Source: Histomonas meleagridis 2922-C6/04-290x (Eukaryota > Protista > Parabasalia). From it: a DNA stretch of 64,000 bases. Position 1 is the first letter of the stretch; each line of letters begins with the position of its first letter. Positions 8,382 to 46,508 of this stretch are shown here, in pieces. Under the pieces are notes generated by a model. It made no database searches, had not been told where the DNA came from, and saw nothing but the letters and a program-made list of their open reading frames with translations. Both the position numbers and the translations under genes were made by a program. Location of the stretch: the NCBI GenBank assembly GCA_020184695.1, contig JAANOX010000236.1:62001-126000 (forward strand), written 5' to 3'.

Positions 8382-9047
8382 ATGAAGAACAATCCAAACT
8401 TCCAAAATATGAGATATCAACCAAATGCTATTCCAATTTATCCAACTTATATTTTCTTCCAGCAACCAATGGGTCCAAAACCTGGTATGATTCCACAACC
8501 TTTCTTACAAAATGTTAATCAAGCTAGACCAAATTATGTACCTCAACAGCCTAATCCAAATCCACAACAGGTGCAAAAGGTGAATAATATTTCCCCATAT
8601 CCACAACAGGTGCAAAAGGTGAATAATATTCCCCCAAATCCACAACAGGTGCAAAAGGTGAATAATATTTCCCCAAATCCACAACCAATACCACAAAGAG
8701 TTGCATCACCAATAAAACAAACGAAACTACATTATACACCAGAAAACATACCAAAAAGCACCTCAATCACTTTTGGAGATGAGATTACCATACAAAAACC
8801 TGAGGCTGAACTTTTACTATTTCCATTTAATTTCGAAAAACCTTTAACTATTGCTGATTCAATCAATGCTTTTAAGCAGAAGGTTCATTTTAATGATAGC
8901 TGCATGATTAATGCAGATAAATCACAAAGCAATGAAAAAATTTCTCATTTTAGTAATTATTTTCAGATCCAAAGAGACTACCACAAAATGGATGAATTCA
9001 AGAATGACGTTGCTATGGCGTGTGATCTAATTGATAGCGAAAATTAA
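8382..9047 (+). CDS. Hypothetical Gln/Pro-rich protein
   Basis: 221-aa ORF with low-complexity N-terminal half; no recognisable domain. Confidence 0.65.
   Translation: MKNNPNFQNMRYQPNAIPIYPTYIFFQQPMGPKPGMIPQPFLQNVNQARPNYVPQQPNPNPQQVQKVNNISPYPQQVQKVNNIPPNPQQVQKVNNISPNPQPIPQRVASPIKQTKLHYTPENIPKSTSITFGDEITIQKPEAELLLFPFNFEKPLTIADSINAFKQKVHFNDSCMINADKSQSNEKISHFSNYFQIQRDYHKMDEFKNDVAMACDLIDSEN
8562..8684 (+). repeat. 39-bp coding tandem repeat, about 3 copies (PQQVQKVNNISPx)
   Basis: CCACAACAGGTGCAAAAGGTGAATAATATT starts at 8562, 8601 and 8640. Confidence 0.9.
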
Positions 9048-16669: not shown

Positions 16670-16932
16670 TGGGTTGATAGTGATCGTTGCTTGTATCGTA
16701 GCTTTATAAAGGTCTCTCCAAACGGAGAAAAAATAATGAAATTTTTCCTAAATTTTTAATATATTCATTTTCTATTATTTGTAAATTCTACTATATATAT
16801 ACATATTATAAATATAATATTAATTTGAAAAGATATTTATATTTTTATTTTAAGTTATAAACGGGCAAGAATAATCGTTCTATATACAAAAATTGAGAGG
16901 ATCGATAATTCAAACATTAAGCCTGGAAACAG

Positions 16933-19900
16933 ATGTACCAAAATAAAGAGCAATATCTTGAAATTATAGAATACTTGAAATCAGTAAATCAAATAATCTT
17001 CGAATTAACAACAGAAAAAATTAATGTTTACATAGAAAAAACAATGCAATTATTTGATTCGAATTTACCTTATTCGTTTAATAATATTATATGTCAAGGC
17101 ATTTATTCATCATTTATTTCTCAAAGAAAAGACATTGATTTATATTTTCATTATTTAAAATTAGTGGAAGAAAAAGAAACCGAAATTCTTAAACATAATC
17201 CAAAAATTTTTAACATTTTCCGCAATTTTCTTATTAGCTTTCATACATGTGAATCAAATTATATACTTGCTGAAATGGTAAAGCATAACTTCATTAAGTA
17301 TGATTTTGGTCAAAAACTGGATGATTTATATTTTATGCATCTTTTCAACGAGGATGAGCTTTATAAAAAACATGACCTCTTTTCATCCCTTTCTGAATTG
17401 CCAGATAAAGAAGATTTAATGAGAAATGATTTTGAACTTCATAAGAAGTTAATTGAAGATGGAGTAAATCCCAATAAAATTGCAAAAATAATTCGAAATG
17501 ATGAAATCGAAAAACTTCAAGAAATATCATCGCAAGAAAGCTTTAATTTTAAACAAATGATTAAACCATCACTATATGAGAAATATTCATTTATTAATAA
17601 GGAAAATGTTTCATTAATTGACTATGCAGCATTTTTTGGATCAATTAAATGTTTTAAGTATTTACTTATGAATGGTTTTAAATTAGAAAATACAGGTAAA
17701 TATGCAATTGCAGGAGGAAATCTTGAAATATTTTACATATGTGAACAAAACCATTCTTCATTTGAAAATGCGTATGAAACAGCAATTGAATTTAATCGAA
17801 ATGATATCTTTAGATATCTTTATGAAAACAAAATTGGTAATATTAAATCTTTTGATTACTTAGGAATAAAATGTATTAAATTTAGTAATTATGAAATTCT
17901 TTCATTTTTAAAAGATAAATTTAAAGATACTAGAAAAATGATTTTCCAAGCTGTATCAAGTGGTAACACTTATATTACTAAATGCTTCCTATCAAAAAAT
18001 GCATTTAATAAAATACTTTTACCAGTTGCTGTTTCGTCTCAAAATATTGAACTGGTAAAATTCATTATTAATCAAAAAGAATTTGATATTAACCATAAAA
18101 ATATTTGTTTTTCTATATTAAAATTTGTTTTATTTCAATGATATTTGTTGATTTAATGCGGATTTTATTTAAATGATTTGATACATCACTTATAATTGCT
18201 TCTAAAAACGGTAACTTTGAAATTGTTAAATTACTTCTTGAACAAAAGGGAATTAATATTAATGAGAAAAACGTTTCTCTTGTTTGTTCAAAATTTATAT
18301 CTATAATTTCTTATTTTTAAAAATAATTTGGAATTTGTCTAAATAGCTTATAACGGCACTTTTGGAATCAGTTTGGTATAATCATACAAAAGTAAGCAAA
18401 ATACTTCTTAAAAATAACGAAATTGAAGTCAATACTAAAACTATTTAATCGTATTGTTTAAAATTTGCTTTATTAATTTAGAATTTTTTAATAATATTTG
18501 GGGATCATTTAAAATATCTAATACAGCACTTATTTGGGCATCATGTAATGGTAATATAGAAACTGTTCATTTACTTATTAAAAAAGTCGGAATTGAAATT
18601 AATGCTAAAAATATAAATACCTTTCATTTAAAATTTATTTTAATAATTTTGGATTTCAAAATAATATTTGGAAATTATTTAAATTATTTGATACAGCACT
18701 TATTTTAGCATCTAAAAATGGTCATACAGAAATACTTAAATTACTTCTTGAGCATAAAGGAATTGATGTTAATGCAAAAAATATTTTTTTGTTTTATTTA
18801 AAATTTATTTCAATAATTTATTATTTCAAAATAATACTAGATTTTTTTAATTATATTTTATGACAGCACTTATGTATGCATCTATAGATGATCATATAGA
18901 AGTAGTTAAATTACTTCTTGAACAAAAAAATATCCAAATTAATGTCAAAAGTGCTTTTCAATCTTTTTTATAATTTGTAAAAATAATTTATAATTTCATA
19001 ATATCATTTGGGAAATTTTTTAATTATTTTGTACACCACTAATATATGCATCTCAAAATGGGCATACAGAAATAGTCAAATTACTTGTTAATCAAAAAGA
19101 TATTGATATCAACATTACAACAGTTAATCTTTTTAATATGATATTCGTTTTGATATTTTGATGGAGTTTCAAAAATATTTATGCAGTTTGAAAAATTTAT
19201 AAACAGCATTAATACATGCATTGATGAAAAAAAGCACTGAAATTGTTGAAATTCTACTTGAACATGGAGCTAACATCTATAATGAAGATATTCGATTAAA
19301 TTATTGTTTCCACTTTTTAATATTGCATGTGAATATGGAAACATTGAACTAGTTAAATTACTTCTTAAGCAAAAAGATATCGATATTAATTTAAGGGATG
19401 AGAATTTATTGATTTTATTGGTAATTTCATAAATTTTATATTAGATAATATGTTTTGGTATTTACAAAAAAAATTTTTTTCGCCTCTTATTTGTGCATCT
19501 TATAATGGTTATATTGAAATTGTTATGTTACTTCTTGAACAAAAAGATATCGATATAAATGCAAAAAAAATTTGATCTTTGTATTTCTAGGTTATTTCAA
19601 AAATTTTACATTAGAAATTAATTTTTGGAAATAATTTAAATGATTTTATACAGCACTTATGGTGGCATCTATGAATGGCCACATAGAAATCGTTAAATTA
19701 CTACTTAAACATAAAGGAATTGATATAAATGCCAAAGATGTTTATTTATTTTATATGTTTGCTAATCATATAGAATGATTTTTGATAATGATATTTGGAG
19801 ATTAATTAAATTATGTCAAAATGTACTTATGATTGCATCACAACATGGAATTATTGATGTTTTTGCAATACTTTTTCAACTACTTAAACATGAAGGAATT

Positions 19901-20690
19901 AACATCAATGATGTAGATCATTTTTTATTCGTTTATTTGATTTTTCTTGATTGTATTTGGATTTTACTAAAATTATTTTTAACGGTACTGATGGTTGCAA
20001 CCTTGAATGGACATTTTAAAATAGTTGAATTTCTTCTTCAACAAAAAGGAATAGATATTAATAGGAAAAATTTTGAAATTTCATGAAATTCTATGGTGTT
20101 TATTAAGGTGATTCAATTCTGCACTTTTGTGTGCAGCTCAAAAAGGATTTTTTGAAATTGTTGCTTTATTTTTGGAACAAAGTGATATTAACATCAATAT
20201 TCAAAATTTTGTTTGATTTTATATAAAATTTATTAATGTTATTTAATATATTGTTTTTATATTTGGATTTTCATTAAATTTTATGACACTGCACTTATGA
20301 TAGCATGCACAAAAGGTTATACACATATAGTTCAAATAATATTACAACATGAAGGAGTTGATGTTAATTTAAAAGACATATATTTAGATTTTTTAAAGAT
20401 TATTTCAATTATTTAATATATCCAAATTTTATAAGGAATTATTTCGAATTATTTAATACAGCACTTATAAATGCAACTAGAGGAGGTCATATTGATATTA
20501 TAAAATTGCTTTATAAACAAAAAGAAATCAATTTATATGATACAAATGTACTTTTTTTATATATGAAATATTTCATAAAGTTTTGAAGTTTCTAAAAATT
20601 ATTTGAAATTTATTTAATTTCATTAAAACTGCACTTGAAATTGCAGGTGAAAATGGTTACACCAAAATTGTAGACTTGATTCTTCAATAA
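16933..20690 (+). CDS. DUF3447 plus ankyrin-repeat protein, predicted 923 aa after removal of 58 x 17-nt inserts
   Basis: 16933-18102 encodes a DUF3447-type region (SLIDYAAFFGSIKCFKYL, KYAIAGGNLEI). Sixteen stop-free ankyrin units follow, starting at 18183, 18353, 18523, 18693, 18863, 19033, 19203, 19310, 19480, 19650, 19820, 19982, 20118, 20288, 20458 and 20628. The last ends TAA at 20688-20690 (TAAA context). 3758-986=2772 nt = 923 codons plus stop. Confidence 0.8.
18103..20627 (+). repeat. 170-bp periodic array: 90-nt ankyrin coding unit plus 80-nt spacer built of four (17-nt insert + 1 codon) modules
   Basis: The start-to-start period of the repeats is exactly 170 nt in 12 of 15 intervals. 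Spacers have 20-nt internal periodicity: ATTT at spacer positions 1, 21 and 41, and GGN at 58-60. Confidence 0.92.
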
Positions 20691-20717
20691 AAAACATATT
20701 ACAAAGTATTCTAAATT

Positions 20718-22340
20718 TTACTTAGCCTCAAATATGTAACATGTGAGTGCATCGCAATTCAAGTTGAATCCGCCATTTCCACTGTATTGTTGACCTGAGA
20801 TAAGATCTTTGAATGATGAACCTCCACAATTAACATAAACAGTTGTTGGTAAAGTTCCTGTATTAACAACAAAAACAATTTTTGTTTGTGTTTGAGTATC
20901 CCATTTGACATTAATAAGTGCTCCATCTTTAGTTGAAACACTATTAGAGCCTCTCCACATCGCTGGATAATTTTGGCGAATGTTCATTATCTTAGCAGTG
21001 TAATCATGCAAATCTTGTTCATTATTGTTGAATCCTGAGATATGTCCGTCAGTACGTGCAACATTATCACCTGCTGTATTTCCACCACAGCCATAAGATT
21101 GCCAGCAATCAGCGATGTCACCAACTTCATCACCATAATAAATAGTTATTGGACCAGTGTAAGCAGCTAAACAACCTAACGCGATCTTATAACGCTTCCA
21201 ATATGAAGGATTACTTCTATCATAACCATATTTGTTACGGATTAAGTTACCGAATCTCCAAACATCATGATTCGTAATGAAAAGATTTGGATAAACATCT
21301 GATGAATATCCTTTTTCACTTGGTGTCTTGAATACATTTGTAAGTGTACCAACACCATAGCCACCAGCACCACTTTCTTCTTGTGCAATAACTTGAACAA
21401 GGTTATAACGTGATGGGAAATCAAATGCTGATTTAAGACCATCTTGTGAATATGTTTGTGATTGGATTTCACTAGCACCACTCCAATGTTCACCAACCAT
21501 ATAACCAAGTGTACCCCATTGTTTGCCTTGGCTCTTACGTTCATTGCATACACTTTGAACTGCTTCACGAATTTCATGCCAATAGTTATGACCGTTTTGA
21601 TAGACTTGATAACATTGATCAAGACGCCAACCATCAATTTCATATTCACGGATCCAATATGTTGCAACTTCTTTATAAAAGTCTAAGCTTCCTGGATATG
21701 AAACTGGGTTACTGCCTCCTTGTGGATATTTACCACTTGGTGATCCTTTGACATTACCTCCATGATGACCGAAAACACCATCTAAAAAGATATACATTCC
21801 ACGATCGTGGCAGCCTTTGATAAGATTACGAAGATCATCATTAGAACCGAATTTAGGATCAACATTGAAATAATCAGTTGCAAAGTAACCTGTCGATTGA
21901 AGTAATGAACCACCAGTTCCACCTGTTGAATCAAAGACTGGTGTAAGCCAAATAGCATTGACATTAAGACCTTTGATGTAATCAAGAGCATTAATGATAC
22001 CTTTGAGATTACCTCTATGACTGCTTGGACCATAGCCTGTGCAATAGCATGATGATCCATCGCCTTGGAATGATGAAACCATAATTTGATAAATTGTAAG
22101 TGAATTGAAATCTGTGTTTAATCCATTTGATGCTGTTCCAATTGTAGTTGTATCTATTGTTGTTTGTGATGTTGATGATGTCGTTTTGTGGAATGTGATA
22201 AATCCGATTGTTGTTCCAACAATTAAACCAATTCCGACACACAAAGCTGCAACCCAGTAATATCTTCTTTTTGGTTTGACTTCCTTCTGGGATTCGATAT
22301 CCTTTGAACCTAAAAGGGGCTCGTTTTGTATTTCCTCCAT
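20718..22340 (-). CDS. GH13 alpha-amylase with N-terminal membrane anchor
   Basis: GNLKGIINALDYIKGLNVNAIWLTPVF, DGVFGH, catalytic DGWRLDQ, VGEHW and FITNHD. Hydrophobic segment YWVAALCVGIGLIVGTTIGFITF. First ATG at 22340. Confidence 0.88.
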   Translation of the reverse strand: MEEIQNEPLLGSKDIESQKEVKPKRRYYWVAALCVGIGLIVGTTIGFITFHKTTSSTSQTTIDTTTIGTASNGLNTDFNSLTIYQIMVSSFQGDGSSCYCTGYGPSSHRGNLKGIINALDYIKGLNVNAIWLTPVFDSTGGTGGSLLQSTGYFATDYFNVDPKFGSNDDLRNLIKGCHDRGMYIFLDGVFGHHGGNVKGSPSGKYPQGGSNPVSYPGSLDFYKEVATYWIREYEIDGWRLDQCYQVYQNGHNYWHEIREAVQSVCNERKSQGKQWGTLGYMVGEHWSGASEIQSQTYSQDGLKSAFDFPSRYNLVQVIAQEESGAGGYGVGTLTNVFKTPSEKGYSSDVYPNLFITNHDVWRFGNLIRNKYGYDRSNPSYWKRYKIALGCLAAYTGPITIYYGDEVGDIADCWQSYGCGGNTAGDNVARTDGHISGFNNNEQDLHDYTAKIMNIRQNYPAMWRGSNSVSTKDGALINVKWDTQTQTKIVFVVNTGTLPTTVYVNCGGSSFKDLISGQQYSGNGGFNLNCDALTCYIFEAK

Positions 22341-22860
22341 TAAAAAATGAAGTAACAAAGAAGGTTAGGTGTTCCATTTGAAAAATGAGAAGGGAAGGTC
22401 ATACGGCGGTTATTTCATATAAAAAGTGCTGACGGGTAAATCAGCCATCAAAAAGTTGTAATGTGAAGTAAATTATTCCTCAATAATGACTATAGTCATT
22501 TATCTAGCTGAATTATTCTAGTCTTTGTATACAGTGGGGTAATAAGTAGTGGGTAATGATATTCTAAAGTTTTTATTTAATTATTGATTTTTGAAATTTC
22601 CTATCAAATAATTGAAGTTAAGTTGTTTCCAATAATCATCACCAATGTAGGGAGTGTTGGCGTTTGGTTAATGAGATATTTGGTTGTAAGAATTTATAAA
22701 TTTTGCTAATTTTTTAACGAAAACATATTTCCATATATAAATAAACTGACCTTATCTTCCTAATATATGTATGTATGTATATGGGATGATAACTCTTATA
22801 TAAGACCAGATACAGAAGGATTTGTTTAACAAAAATTAACGTTCTCTATACCTTTGCCAA

Positions 22861-44815: not shown

Positions 44816-46508
44816 TTGATCATAATGATTTTTGCAATAATAATAATAATCATATTGATTTTCCAATTCAAATTTAACTGTTTTCCTGAAATTTATTTTA
44901 TGAATAATATTAATATTAAAAAAAAATATATTTCATTCTTATTTTTATTATTCTTTGTTAAAACATTTCAAACATTTGATGAAACAAAAAATACTCTTAC
45001 AATAACTCAAACAAGTGAATTTACAGATGATTATAAAAATGTTGCTGAACATGTTATAGTTTCTGGTGTAGAAATTATTTAGGATGCTTTTTATCAATGG
45101 ACTTTATTATTAACTGCAAAAATTGGAGACTCAGTTGTTAGAGTTTTATCATCTGCATTTAAATATTGTTCTAATTCAGAAAAAGTTGAATTTGGGAAAA
45201 ATTTGGAAACATTATATTATAATTCTTTTTGCGGGTGCAAATTTGTAAATATTATAATTCCAAGCACAATTTGTGCTACCAGAGCGCAATTTGTGCGTGC
45301 AATGAACTTGAAACTGTTATTATTGAAGAAGGCTTAACGACACTTGGAGATTATGCTTTTCAATCCTGTATAAAATTAAAAAATGTAAATATTCCAAGTT
45401 CTGTACAAAAAATTTCTACAAATCCATTTAATAGATGTACTAGTCTGCAATTTATCAATGTTTCAAAAGAAAGTCAATACTTTGCAAATTATAATAATGA
45501 TGGTATTTTATATGATAAAGGCATCTCAAAACTCATTAGTTATCCAATTGGAATTCTAGCAAAAAAATTTACAATTCCACTTCCTGTCACTTCTATAGAG
45601 ATGATGGCATTTCAAATATGTTCAACAATAGAGACTGTTATTATTGGGGAAAATGTTAATTCAATAGGAACGAATGCATTTTTTAGCTGTTCTTCCCTTA
45701 AATGTATTTATTTCTATGGGGAAAAACAACCAACCATAAGTTATAAAGCAATTTCTTCTATTCTAGCAACATCAGTTATGGTAACAGAAATATATCAAAA
45801 TAATACATTTGGTGATTTAAGTATTGTCAAAGGAATAATTGATGAATGTATTCCAATGACCAATACATTTTCTAAATCAAATACATTTACGAAATCAAAT
45901 ACATTTTCTAATCAAATATACTTACGAAATCAAATACATTTTCTAAATCAAATATATTTACTAAATCAAATACATTTACTAAATCAAATACATTTATTCA
46001 TTTGTTACAAATGGAAACAACTTTTTCTCATTCTTTTAGGTGAGCTCATTCAATGACAATAATAATAACATTTACTGTTAATAACTCATATTCTATAAAT
46101 ACATACTTATTATCTATGATTGGTTCAACATATACATATGTTATAACAAATTTCGTTTTTTACGAATATACTGTCATTTTTTACAAATCTGAGATCGAAT
46201 TTTATTCAATTTATTTCACTATTTTTTATAAACAAATGGCACCAAACGAAAATAATACTCCAATAAATCTAATAATTATTGTTGTATGCGTTATAGTAGT
46301 GATTATTATTATTATTTCATTAATTATTGTTTTTATTATTCGTAAACATAATAAAAAAGAAACGATTTCAGAACAATTTATGTCAAACGAAGAAATCGAA
46401 CAAAACAACATTGAAATCAATCGTCATTTTAATGACAAAAAAACAAGTTCTATAGAAGAAGATCCTTTTGCTATTGATTTTAGAGAAAATAATTTTGTTA
46501 ACATATAA
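44816..46508 (+). pseudogene. Disrupted BspA-like gene
   Basis: Same architecture as 30199-33042 (TKNTLTI..AEHVIVSGV, LRRs, TKSNTF repeats, TM, EEDPFAIDFREN). Lesions: TAG at 45080, frameshift near 45272, 1-nt loss near 45909, TGA at 46041. Confidence 0.8.

Follow-up and report, generated by a model that had tools for sequence, protein, structure and literature searches.

The window, by which we mean the whole 64,000-nt stretch of DNA that was analysed, carries on its plus strand an ankyrin gene of the poultry parasite Histomonas meleagridis (16933-20690) that is interrupted by 58 inserts, each of exactly 17 nt. Conceptual removal of all 58 leaves one 2772-nt ORF of 923 codons plus stop, whose sole stop codon is the terminal one, encoding a DUF3447/ankyrin N-terminus and 17 ankyrin modules of 30 codons each. 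The N-terminal 390 aa match Pfam DUF3447 (PF11929) and Ank families, in the DUF3447-then-ankyrin layout of parabasalid DUF3447-ankyrin proteins. An uninterrupted first exon (16933-18102) encodes the DUF3447 domain and the first ankyrin module; with no insert removed, the ORF continues past 18102 to a stop at 18139.

Protein searches named paralogues in H. meleagridis and homologues in Tritrichomonas. A 101-aa query of the spliced product gave no protein matches, and a 402-aa query and an exhaustive representative search returned only paralogues at no more than 68% identity and not the full-length product, no protein longer than about 400 aa having been found for this gene in the protein libraries. 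No further ankyrin gene was found within the window, and two 221-aa ORFs at 8382 and 12254 that at first resembled duplicates proved unrelated on comparison.

The ankyrin modules read as protein throughout, with no stop in 390 in-frame codons versus 26 and 58 in the other two frames, and their pairwise identity by codon position (0.60, 0.79 and 0.55 for positions 1, 2 and 3) is highest at position 2 and lowest at position 3. The exons are thus under protein-level constraint.

Intervening sequences in RNA and DNA

The spacers between modules measure 80 nt (13 times), 63, 46 and 20 nt, and each consists of 12 nt of loop codons (3 nt in the 20-nt spacer) plus a multiple of 17 nt. The 80-, 63- and 46-nt spacers therefore hold four, three and two inserts, respectively, with four loop codons each, and the 20-nt spacer holds one insert and one codon. 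Glycine occupies loop position 3 in 13 of the 15 four-codon loops.

This arrangement could be compared with RNA contigs from four runs, the label of which ('RNA?') was assigned by guess. The contigs span 16950 to beyond 20750, are identical to the exons with no other letters, and jump over the spacers while retaining 12 letters of each. They are known by coordinates, and the inner retained codons were deduced from letter counts, piece ends and the G pattern. Subtracting RNA records from the genome gave differences of 17, 51, 68 (six times), 102, 136 (twice) and 238 nt, all multiples of 17 as predicted, and about 20 RNA piece ends coincide exactly with the predictions of the model.

All spacers lie on the plus strand, and spacers 1-7, 9-11 and 14-16 are those of 80 nt. 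Spacer 1 (18103-18182) contains inserts 18103-18119, 18123-18139, 18143-18159 and 18163-18179 with the loop KDGD, and an RNA piece ends at 18103 as predicted; spacer 2 (18273-18352) contains inserts 18273-18289, 18293-18309, 18313-18329 and 18333-18349 with the loop KLGI, and an RNA piece starts at 18350, its last loop codon. Across spacer 3 (18443-18522; inserts 18443-18459, 18463-18479, 18483-18499 and 18503-18519; loop KRGN), 76 genome nt are represented by 8 letters in RNA contig X4 record 15, a loss of 68 nt. An RNA piece ends at 18613, where spacer 4 begins (18613-18692; inserts 18613-18629, 18633-18649, 18653-18669 and 18673-18689; loop KWGD), and spacer 5 (18783-18862; inserts 18783-18799, 18803-18819, 18823-18839 and 18843-18859; loop KIDM) was laid out by register only.

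Spacer 6 (18953-19032; inserts 18953-18969, 18973-18989, 18993-19009 and 19013-19029; loop IIGC) is followed by one with shifted sites, spacer 7 (19123-19202; inserts 19123-19139, 19143-19159, 19166-19182 and 19186-19202; loop DDGA), in which 78 genome nt become 10 letters in RNA, again a loss of 68 nt, with piece ends at 19123 and 19202 that fit the layout. The 20-nt spacer 8 (19290-19309) has one insert (19290-19306) followed by TTT, and in each of the four RNA runs the entire contig depth (100%) lacks 17 nt at 19290. In spacer 9 (19400-19479) GAG AAT is kept, 19406-19456 removed, GGT kept, 19460-19476 removed and TTT kept, giving the loop ENGF; one RNA piece stops at 19405 and the next begins at 19476, 2 letters separating them, and the 51 nt of 19406-19456 are either three abutting 17-mers or one unit.

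An RNA piece ends exactly at 19569, before spacer 10 (19570-19649; inserts 19570-19586, 19590-19606, 19610-19626 and 19630-19646; loop LYGY), and another restarts at 19817, the last loop codon of spacer 11 (19740-19819; inserts 19740-19756, 19760-19776, 19780-19796 and 19800-19816; loop VDGQ), the two spacers jointly losing 136 nt. The 63-nt spacer 12 (19919-19981) reads CAT, insert 19922-19938, GAT, insert 19942-19958, GGA, insert 19962-19978 and TTA (loop HDGL), and its RNA pieces, ending at 19921 and restarting at 19979 with 6 letters between, account for 51 nt removed. The 46-nt spacer 13 (20072-20117) reads TTT GAA, insert 20078-20094, GGT, insert 20098-20114 and AAT (loop FEGN), with an RNA piece that runs to 20077; the next piece restarts at 20285, within spacer 14 (20208-20287; inserts 20208-20224, 20228-20244, 20248-20264 and 20268-20284; loop KNGD), so that 102 nt, or 6 x 17, are lost between 20077 and 20285. 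Spacers 15 (20378-20457; inserts 20378-20394, 20398-20414, 20418-20434 and 20438-20454; loop KNGN) and 16 (20548-20627; inserts 20548-20564, 20568-20584, 20588-20604 and 20608-20624; loop EEEK) each reduce 76 genome nt to 8 letters in contig X2 record 9, a loss of 68 nt apiece. All that could be checked in the initial annotation was confirmed, and the layout of spacers 9 and 12 was corrected from the RNA piece ends.

Word counts agree with the contigs. The share of 31-mers of 18103-20627 present is 0.35-0.36 in the RNA runs versus 0.90-0.91 in DNA runs from two samples, the expectation being about 0.38 if no spacer word were present. The 17-mers are true intervening sequences, present in genomic DNA and absent from mature RNA in exact 17-nt units, and letter counts and piece ends indicate that the loop codons between them are kept. 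The processed message thus encodes one continuous 923-aa DUF3447/ankyrin protein, in which the loops match the ankyrin x-x-G-x pattern. No published description of such 17-nt inserts was found in the literature; they are a previously undescribed kind of tiny intron.

One insert escaped removal. Contig X3 record 12 is unbroken over 19010-19123 and so retains 19013-19029, the fourth insert of spacer 6, while the downstream spacers that it covers are processed. Given that the rest of its coverage is processed, this contig favours removal after transcription.

Signals in the inserts and at other loci

Insert length is 17 nt in 58 of 58 after RNA-based corrections, and copies in the same slot are only 59% identical. 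The consensus is RTTT-N10-ATTT: the first base is A in 35 inserts and G in 13, T fills positions 2-4 in 47-49, A occupies position 14 in 39 and T fills positions 15-17 in 42-51, counts that agree with the (A/G)TTT-like starts and (A)TTT ends described initially. The consensuses given there for slots 2-4 were likewise reproduced by the column consensus of eleven 80-nt spacers.

Allowing all equivalent registers, none of the 58 can be read as GT..AG, in agreement with the initial claim that no register gives such ends; a GT start is possible in 8 and an AG end in none, and 31 start AT and 38 end TT. The ACTAAC branch motif, whose absence had also been noted, does not occur in 18103-20627, nor do ACACAG or GTATGT, and matches to the fused trichomonad branch/3' 12-mer are no more frequent than chance over the whole window. 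Register ambiguity is 0-2 nt for nearly all inserts and mostly 0-1 nt, consistent with the reported lack of a pointer direct repeat, and a target-site duplication of the flanking codon was rejected since the codons on the two sides usually differ. Nor was there a stable hairpin, in keeping with the earlier reading: spacers fold like their mononucleotide shuffles (mean z -0.04, or +0.35 with 15-nt flanks). The entering-frame stops TAA 18446, TGA 19573 and TGA 20214 are located as described, and an in-frame stop lies inside 19 of the 58 inserts. The conclusion that neither canonical GT-AG or AT-AC splicing nor -1 slippage suffices is thus borne out by the missing splice ends and motifs and by these stops.

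The 17-mer carries about 7.3 bits of information in total against the genome background. Over 38 kb of ordinary ORFs in the window, 45 17-nt windows score at or above the median real insert, where codon shuffles predict 43.2, and at the lower-quartile threshold 297 were observed versus 289.7 expected, so that insert-like 17-mers are neither depleted nor avoided in these ORFs at either threshold. Given so weak a signal and equally scoring decoys, the insert sequence alone cannot specify excision.

Spacers quantised by 17 also occur in two paralogues in the same genome (L001 and L009) and two metagenome contigs (L002 and L007), with lengths of 12+17k nt (k = 0, 3, 4, 5) and 9+17 nt, and of 100, 140, 180 and 280 nt, or 5, 7, 9 and 14 units of 17+3. 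Taken over all five loci, 153 inserts in number, a purine opens 139 (A in 80, G in 59) and C opens none; T follows at position 2 in 130, A stands at position 11 in 100 and at position 14 in 114, and 137 have T at position 17. In 100 of the 153 there is a TAAT/AAT element about 6 nt before the 3' end. About half of the inserts at the other loci start GT, one among those listed for L009 with GTATGT. Inserts have so far been seen in ankyrin genes only. A Tritrichomonas foetus homologue (L003) is a single unbroken ORF, belongs to a different subfamily and says little; Logan contigs L004-L006, from a distant relative, are without such spacers.

Routes of removal

A strongly derived spliceosomal reaction is our best guess for the removal of the 17-mers, one to which we give about an even chance. 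The inserts would be transcribed and then removed one unit at a time. Given that sites slide by 3 nt and units can abut, each unit probably has its own weak signal (R-T-T-T ... A-T-T-T) together with a strict length of 17 nt. The reaction may be a derived form of trichomonad short-intron splicing with replacements for GT, CTAAC and AG, in which the purine-T 5' end, the T run, the terminal T and, some 6 nt before the 3' end, a branch region resembling TAAT would stand in for the canonical signals, and the fixed length might reflect the smallest geometry that the catalytic centre permits, as it does in other introns of such extreme shortness. The array itself may have grown through tandem duplications, both of a 20-nt unit made up of an insert and one codon and of entire 170-nt repeat units.

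What makes the derived spliceosomal reaction a serious candidate is the purine-T start, the GT found in about half of the inserts elsewhere, and a TAAT/AAT element near the fixed trichomonad branch-to-3' distance (PMC12316389). The initial annotation was right that the canonical form is insufficient, but the purine-T start and the TAAT/AAT element across 153 inserts indicate that it dismissed the spliceosome too fast. Counting against the spliceosome are the 3' T, with AG in none of the 58, and a first position that is more often A than G; RT..TT is, to our knowledge, not among the recognised spliceosomal end pairs. No known splice-site pairing easily accommodates 17-nt introns separated by exons of 3 nt or, in spacer 9, 0 nt.

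The main rival, already among the initial candidates and in our view possible but doubtful, is a spliceosome-independent excision in which an endonuclease and an RNA ligase of the RtcB/Trl1 type would cut exactly 17 nt per event by means of a molecular ruler, possibly with the aid of a protein or RNA that reads the ankyrin-loop context. An invariant length with weakly conserved sequence, single-codon and zero-length 'exons' between units, and the T at the 3' end without GT-AG or ACTAAC would all suit such a system. Moreover, the 17-mer model fails to separate inserts from decoys, and decoys are not depleted, so that a context-specific factor would be needed, and the inserts known so far are from ankyrin genes. 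On the other hand, there is no bulge-helix-bulge or stem-loop of the kind that known introns of this class need, and both the R-T 5' end, whose first base is G in about 40% of the inserts, and the TAAT element recall the spliceosome. We know of no endonuclease-ligase system acting on nuclear mRNAs at such scale. Tentatively, then, Histomonas might possess an excision system without a spliceosome that measures 17 nt and rejoins the ends, makes dozens of cuts per transcript that leave single codons, and is targeted to the loops of one ankyrin family by a cue outside the insert, such as a context-reading protein or guide RNAs.

DNA-level removal, by which transcripts would come from an insert-free copy (such as a processed paralogue, a copy outside the chromosomes, or one left by programmed elimination in some of the nuclei), would accommodate word shares of 0.90-0.91 rather than 1.0 in the DNA runs, but is very unlikely: the inserts are at about full word share in DNA of both samples, their borders are without pointer or TA repeats, the RNA contig with one kept insert would require a partly processed DNA template, and an insert-free but otherwise identical twin would have to exist for each of dozens of ankyrin genes. 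We find it barely credible that RNA polymerase jumps the 17-mers, which had been among the initial candidates; mature RNA without inserts and the want of recognisable splice signals would fit inserts that never enter RNA, but 19013-19029 is retained in an otherwise processed contig, no structure or repeat could realign the transcript, and we know of no precedent for repeated, exact 17-nt polymerase jumps. Next to no weight attaches to inserts that stay in mRNA and are hopped or frameshifted over, or to a dead, untranslated array with the protein ending at 18141, for although the frame moves by 2 at every insert, the ORF without processing ends at 18139 and protein searches found nothing longer than about 400 aa, the RNA contigs lack the inserts, 19 of 58 inserts contain in-frame stops, the modules have no stops and a coding pattern of conservation, and the transcript continues beyond 20750.

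Ribosomal bypass, which had initially been listed as a candidate, and frameshifting are refuted by the RNA data, the mature RNA being free of inserts. So are whole-spacer introns spliced through cryptic GT-AG sites, the case that had been named as fatal to the initial reading and in which the x-x-G-x codons would be dropped: the contigs keep 12 letters per spacer, and many spacers have no GT at all.

Significance and known systems

Parabasalids are a textbook case of eukaryotes poor in introns, those that they have being of the rigid GT...ACTAAC...AG form. In H. meleagridis at most one intron per gene was reported with the genome (PMC8529796), whereas the locus here has 58 intervening sequences in one gene, 17 nt each, without GT-AG and often one codon apart. 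If spliceosomal, they would redefine the limits of splice-site chemistry and of how short introns and exons can be (3 nt, perhaps 0, for exons); if not, they would represent a new RNA-processing pathway. Given that any insert left in place disrupts the reading frame, full-length protein would be made in proportion to the per-insert efficiency raised to the power 58. Either way, a large ankyrin family has been missed or truncated in annotation of the Histomonas genome, splice-junction pipelines in which non-canonical junctions are filtered out (as in PMC12316389) would overlook comparable events in relatives, and the locus provides a compact substrate on which the measuring of 17 nt by a cell can be tested.

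Among known systems, the inserts resemble bypass elements in being short, frame-breaking and stop-containing within otherwise intact coding sequence. Those elements (T4 gene 60 and the Magnusiomyces capitatus mitochondrial 'byps') stay in mRNA and need matched take-off and landing codons and structure, whereas the inserts are absent from RNA and their flanking codons differ. Ciliate internal eliminated sequences are likewise short, AT-rich and precisely removed, and interrupt coding sequence, but they are cut out of DNA and flanked by TA or pointer repeats; the inserts are present in DNA sequenced from two samples, lack pointers, and in one case are retained in RNA. The defined structure at both cut sites that characterises tRNA bulge-helix-bulge and IRE1/HAC1-type introns is not seen here, there being no structure above shuffles.

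Euglenid nonconventional introns offer a parallel as nuclear mRNA intervening sequences without GT-AG borders and with no known removal machinery. They vary in length and are defined by pairing of their ends, in contrast to the fixed length and lack of significant structure (z about 0) of the Histomonas inserts.

Ultra-short introns are known from Stentor (15-16 nt) and chlorarachniophyte nucleomorphs (18-21 nt), and these, like mikrocytid introns, have canonical GT-AG ends. Mikrocytid introns are all 16-17 nt (PMC10245619). The inserts share with this group an extremely narrow length at the lower limit of intron size (58 of 58 at 17 nt, with four other loci quantised by 17) and removal from mRNA with some retention. 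However, introns of the three groups are reported to be spliceosomal, with conserved sequences, and to occur in many kinds of genes, whereas the inserts lack both GT-AG ends and strong conservation (about 7 bits), and lie in tandem arrays with 3-nt or 0-nt exons in, as far as seen, one ankyrin subfamily.

Trichomonad introns described so far are all GT/AG with a near-invariant fused branch/3' motif, and a shift of the branch site abolishes splicing (PMC12316389, PMC6679479). Type B introns of T. vaginalis are 23-25 nt long, with a 5' motif followed by T's and by a branch site that is joined, at a fixed distance, to the 3' site (PMC12316389); in T. vaginalis and T. stableri they are GT...AG with TCTAAC/ACTAAC, at most one per transcript and about 63 genome-wide (PMC12316389, PMC6260720). 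Of the features by which type A and B introns are recognised, the AG 3' end and the fused ACTAAC/TCTAAC branch site are missing from the inserts and a GT 5' end is possible in only 8 of the 58, which differ further in their 17-nt length, 3' T, first position more often A than G, lack of CTAAC, and number, 58 in one gene with single-codon separation. Yet they belong to the same phylum (Parabasalia) and, like type B introns, are very short and of narrow length range, with a T-rich interior, a purine-T beginning and, a fixed short way before the 3' end, an element resembling a branch site, and they are absent from mature mRNA with their flanks precisely joined, as the contig coordinates, the 17-nt gap at 19290 and the word shares all attest.

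Architecture of the interrupted ankyrin gene

The ankyrin gene begins at 16933 on the forward strand with a 402-codon ORF, the product of which gave Pfam hits to DUF3447 and ankyrin, and three-frame translation recovered 16 more ankyrin modules of about 30 codons (29-33), in frames that rotate 0, 2, 1 and so forth, ending at a stop at 20688-20690. The spacers between modules measure exactly 80 nt in 13 cases and 63, 46 and 20 nt in the others, lengths that decompose into 12 nt (3 nt in the 20-nt spacer) plus four, three, two or one times 17 nt. When the 17-nt inserts were excised in silico the gene became one ORF of 923 codons whose sole stop is the terminal one, and 13 of the 15 four-codon loops so restored read x-x-G-x (KDGD, KWGD, KNGN, HDGL, ENGF, etc.), the pattern of the ankyrin beta-hairpin loop.

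The modules contain no stop among 390 in-frame codons, as against 26 and 58 in the remaining two frames, and their pairwise identity at the three codon positions (0.60/0.79/0.55) has the profile expected under constraint on the protein. In the inserts, A+T makes up 89% and T alone 57%; they are 59% identical within the same slot and 53% between different slots, where composition alone predicts 40%. All 58 are 17 nt long, and this length is conserved far better than the sequence.

The window has a G+C content of 28.5% and carries long, intron-free ORFs, among them those for Vps53, alpha-amylase and the DNA primase large subunit; no further gene with ankyrin modules was found in its 64 kb. At 45229-46508 lie two ORFs in different frames (a shift of 2), one of 275 aa that is BspA-type LRR and one of 151 aa in which a membrane segment is predicted. 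Their overlap of 4 nt comes directly after the tandem repeat that spans roughly 45880-45990, and a frameshift, an error in sequencing or a further small intervening sequence might account for it.

Inserts in DNA and in RNA

Four sequencing runs from one 2023 study, whose label as RNA is a guess, contained 0.45-0.48 of the words of 16900-20750. For the spacer-bearing region 18103-20627 the share was 0.35-0.36 in these runs, with about 0.38 expected were no spacer words present at all, and 0.90-0.91 in two DNA runs from two samples.

RNA contigs were aligned by coordinates to 16900-20750, and the removed length was taken as the genome distance minus the contig distance. Where contigs match the exons with 0 other letters, they leap every spacer that they cover. 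Spacers 3, 7, 9, 15 and 16 each lack 68 nt (for spacer 7, between 19033 and 19203), spacer 12 lacks 51 nt, and spacer 8 lacks 17 nt at 19290, an omission seen throughout the contig depth (100%) of each of the four runs; contigs that cross several spacers lack 136 nt over spacers 10 and 11 and again over 15 and 16, 102 nt over 13 and 14, and 238 nt over 13 to 16. Every removed length is the predicted multiple of 17, exactly 12 letters are kept per single spacer, and about 20 contig pieces end at the nucleotide predicted by the model, with pieces beginning at the last loop codon at, for example, 18350, 18520, 19817, 19979, 20285, 20455 and 20625. Piece ends further indicate that in spacer 9 GAG AAT is kept, followed by a single lost block of 51 nt, a kept GGT, a further 17 nt lost and a kept TTT, and that in spacer 12 CAT is retained ahead of the first insert. 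For the inner codons that are retained, identity was deduced from letter counts, piece ends, the 17-nt quantization and the G pattern, the contigs being read as coordinates and not as letters.

The inserts are thus present in DNA and missing from mature RNA, and the observation is real and RNA-supported. On this ground we can rule out frameshifting, bypass by the ribosome and the excision of spacers in their entirety.

One contig from run X3 is continuous over 19010-19123 and therefore retains the fourth insert of spacer 6 (19013-19029), with all covered downstream spacers processed. Retention brings a TAA into the downstream frame, and the insert may be a slow or regulated site. Such partly processed RNA fits post-transcriptional removal, evidence that we grade as suggestive because it comes from a single contig.

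The transcript also runs past the ankyrin stop, with contigs extending about 120 nt beyond it (20690-20813) and entering the alpha-amylase ORF at its 3' end; this ORF is convergent (minus strand, 20718-22358), and the transcripts of the two genes therefore overlap. Over the modules in 16900-20750, RNA contigs from paralogues stack at depths of 10^4-10^6, so transcripts of the ankyrin family are very abundant; these contigs show uninterrupted ordinary loops, such as K-D-N-Y-G-K before TAL.

Insert signals and specificity

The initial annotation described inserts that mostly open with R-T-T-T and close with A-T-T-T, follow slot-specific consensuses and lack spliceosomal signals. Column counts bear out both ends, and the slot consensuses were recovered from the column consensus of eleven 80-nt spacers. 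In no register does any of the 58 inserts have GT-AG borders, a GT start being possible in 8 and an AG end in none; ACTAAC, ACACAG and GTATGT are all absent from the spacer region. We likewise found no pointer repeats (border ambiguity is 0-2 nt in nearly all inserts) and no stable structure, the spacers folding no better than shuffled sequences. The three in-frame stops that had been named (TAA at 18446, TGA at 19573 and at 20214) do lie in the entering frame, as do stops in 19 of the 58 inserts overall.

Adding 95 inserts from other loci to the 58 of the window, with the standard register assumed, gave 153 inserts with the consensus RTTTNTTTWAATWATTT. At position 1, 80 inserts have A and 59 have G, with no C at all; T occupies position 2 in 130 and position 17 in 137, and A occupies position 11 in 100 and position 14 in 114. 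About half of the inserts from other loci start with GT, and one listed insert from the Histomonas paralogue locus L009 starts with GTATGT, the canonical trichomonad 5' site.

The 17-mer carries about 7.3 bits against the genome background. Under a model trained on the other loci the real inserts have a median score of 6.9, which 45 stretches also reach or exceed in the window's ordinary ORFs (38 kb); codon-shuffled versions of those ORFs gave 43.2 +/- 6.6, so there is no avoidance of decoys in them, and a 23-nt model that includes the flanks behaved in the same way. It may be that look-alikes are tolerated; if not, excision must depend on context outside the insert. The 3-nt sliding of sites in spacers 7, 9 and 12 argues against a simple ruler from exon ends.

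Spread, removal and relation to known introns

Paralogues of the N-terminal domain bear the NCBI name Histomonas meleagridis. On one such locus, L001, spacers measure 80 nt (eight), 63 nt (three), 97 nt (12+5x17) and 26 nt (9+17), with others off the 17-nt quantum (79, 73, 91, 64 and 75 nt) and in-frame stops in several modules. An ORF of about 240 aa resembling a transposase, mariner/Tc1-like by eye only, lies within this gene (L001:6400-7150). Its in-frame stops, off-quantum spacers and inserted transposase ORF make it probably a decaying copy. On L009 the gene for protein P0013 runs beyond its annotated end and has four 80-nt spacers, and a neighboring ankyrin gene (L009:496-1465) has spacers of 280, 180, 140 and 100 nt, that is 14, 9, 7 and 5 units of exactly 17+3, every 17-mer being in register with the R-T-T-T...A-T-T-T pattern; judged from the sequence, its loops would comprise 5-14 residues. 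Two metagenome contigs, L002 and L007, likewise have 80-nt spacers, and one junction on L002 is 12 nt with zero inserts. A DDE_Tnp_IS1595-type transposase occurs on metagenome scaffolds with a Histomonas-like interrupted ankyrin gene (L007:4380-5279 and L008).

Growth by tandem duplication of a 20-nt unit is suggested by the 17+3 arrays, which count 5-14 units each, and amplification of entire repeat units by the period of 170 nt; the spacers of 63 and 46 nt seem to have lost single units precisely.

The inserts are very probably removed at the RNA level. If so, a derived spliceosomal reaction would have roughly an even chance of being the means, and most of the remaining probability goes to an endonuclease-ligase or guided system. 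No argument for a factor dedicated to recognition is stronger than the specificity problem. An insert-free DNA template is improbable, and the insert retained in the X3 contig sits awkwardly with it; skipping by RNA polymerase, for which the partly processed contig is similarly awkward, is more improbable still; and ribosomal bypass, which the loss of the inserts from mature RNA contradicts, or a dead gene is the least probable of all. Because each unremoved insert breaks the frame, protein yield would vary with the 58th power of the efficiency at each insert; such a dependence may burden the cell or serve as a throttle for regulation.

No published account of such inserts was found in searches on 17-nt introns, parabasalid non-canonical or short introns and Histomonas introns, although journal coverage was partial and this is not proof of novelty. 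The Histomonas genome paper, on two strains with 28.7% G+C, gives 'at maximum one intron' per gene (PMC8529796), and the pipeline behind the T. vaginalis intron catalog drops any junction that lacks canonical motifs (PMC12316389). The chance that the excision machinery itself is new is substantial. By analogy with T. vaginalis type B introns, which are 23-25 nt long and are built from a 5' motif, T's and a TCTAAC that is joined to the 3' site with fixed spacing (PMC12316389), the TTAAT/TAAT element 6-7 nt before the 3' end of the 17-mer could be an A+T-shifted counterpart of the type B branch site; more speculatively, the usual G-G or A-C contact might be replaced by pairing between the terminal U and the purine at +1. 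Among the nearest reports are the 16-17 nt introns of mikrocytids (PMC10245619) and a comparison of parabasalid and diplomonad introns (PMC6679479), and the inserts are best filed with tiny non-canonical introns, as a new variant.
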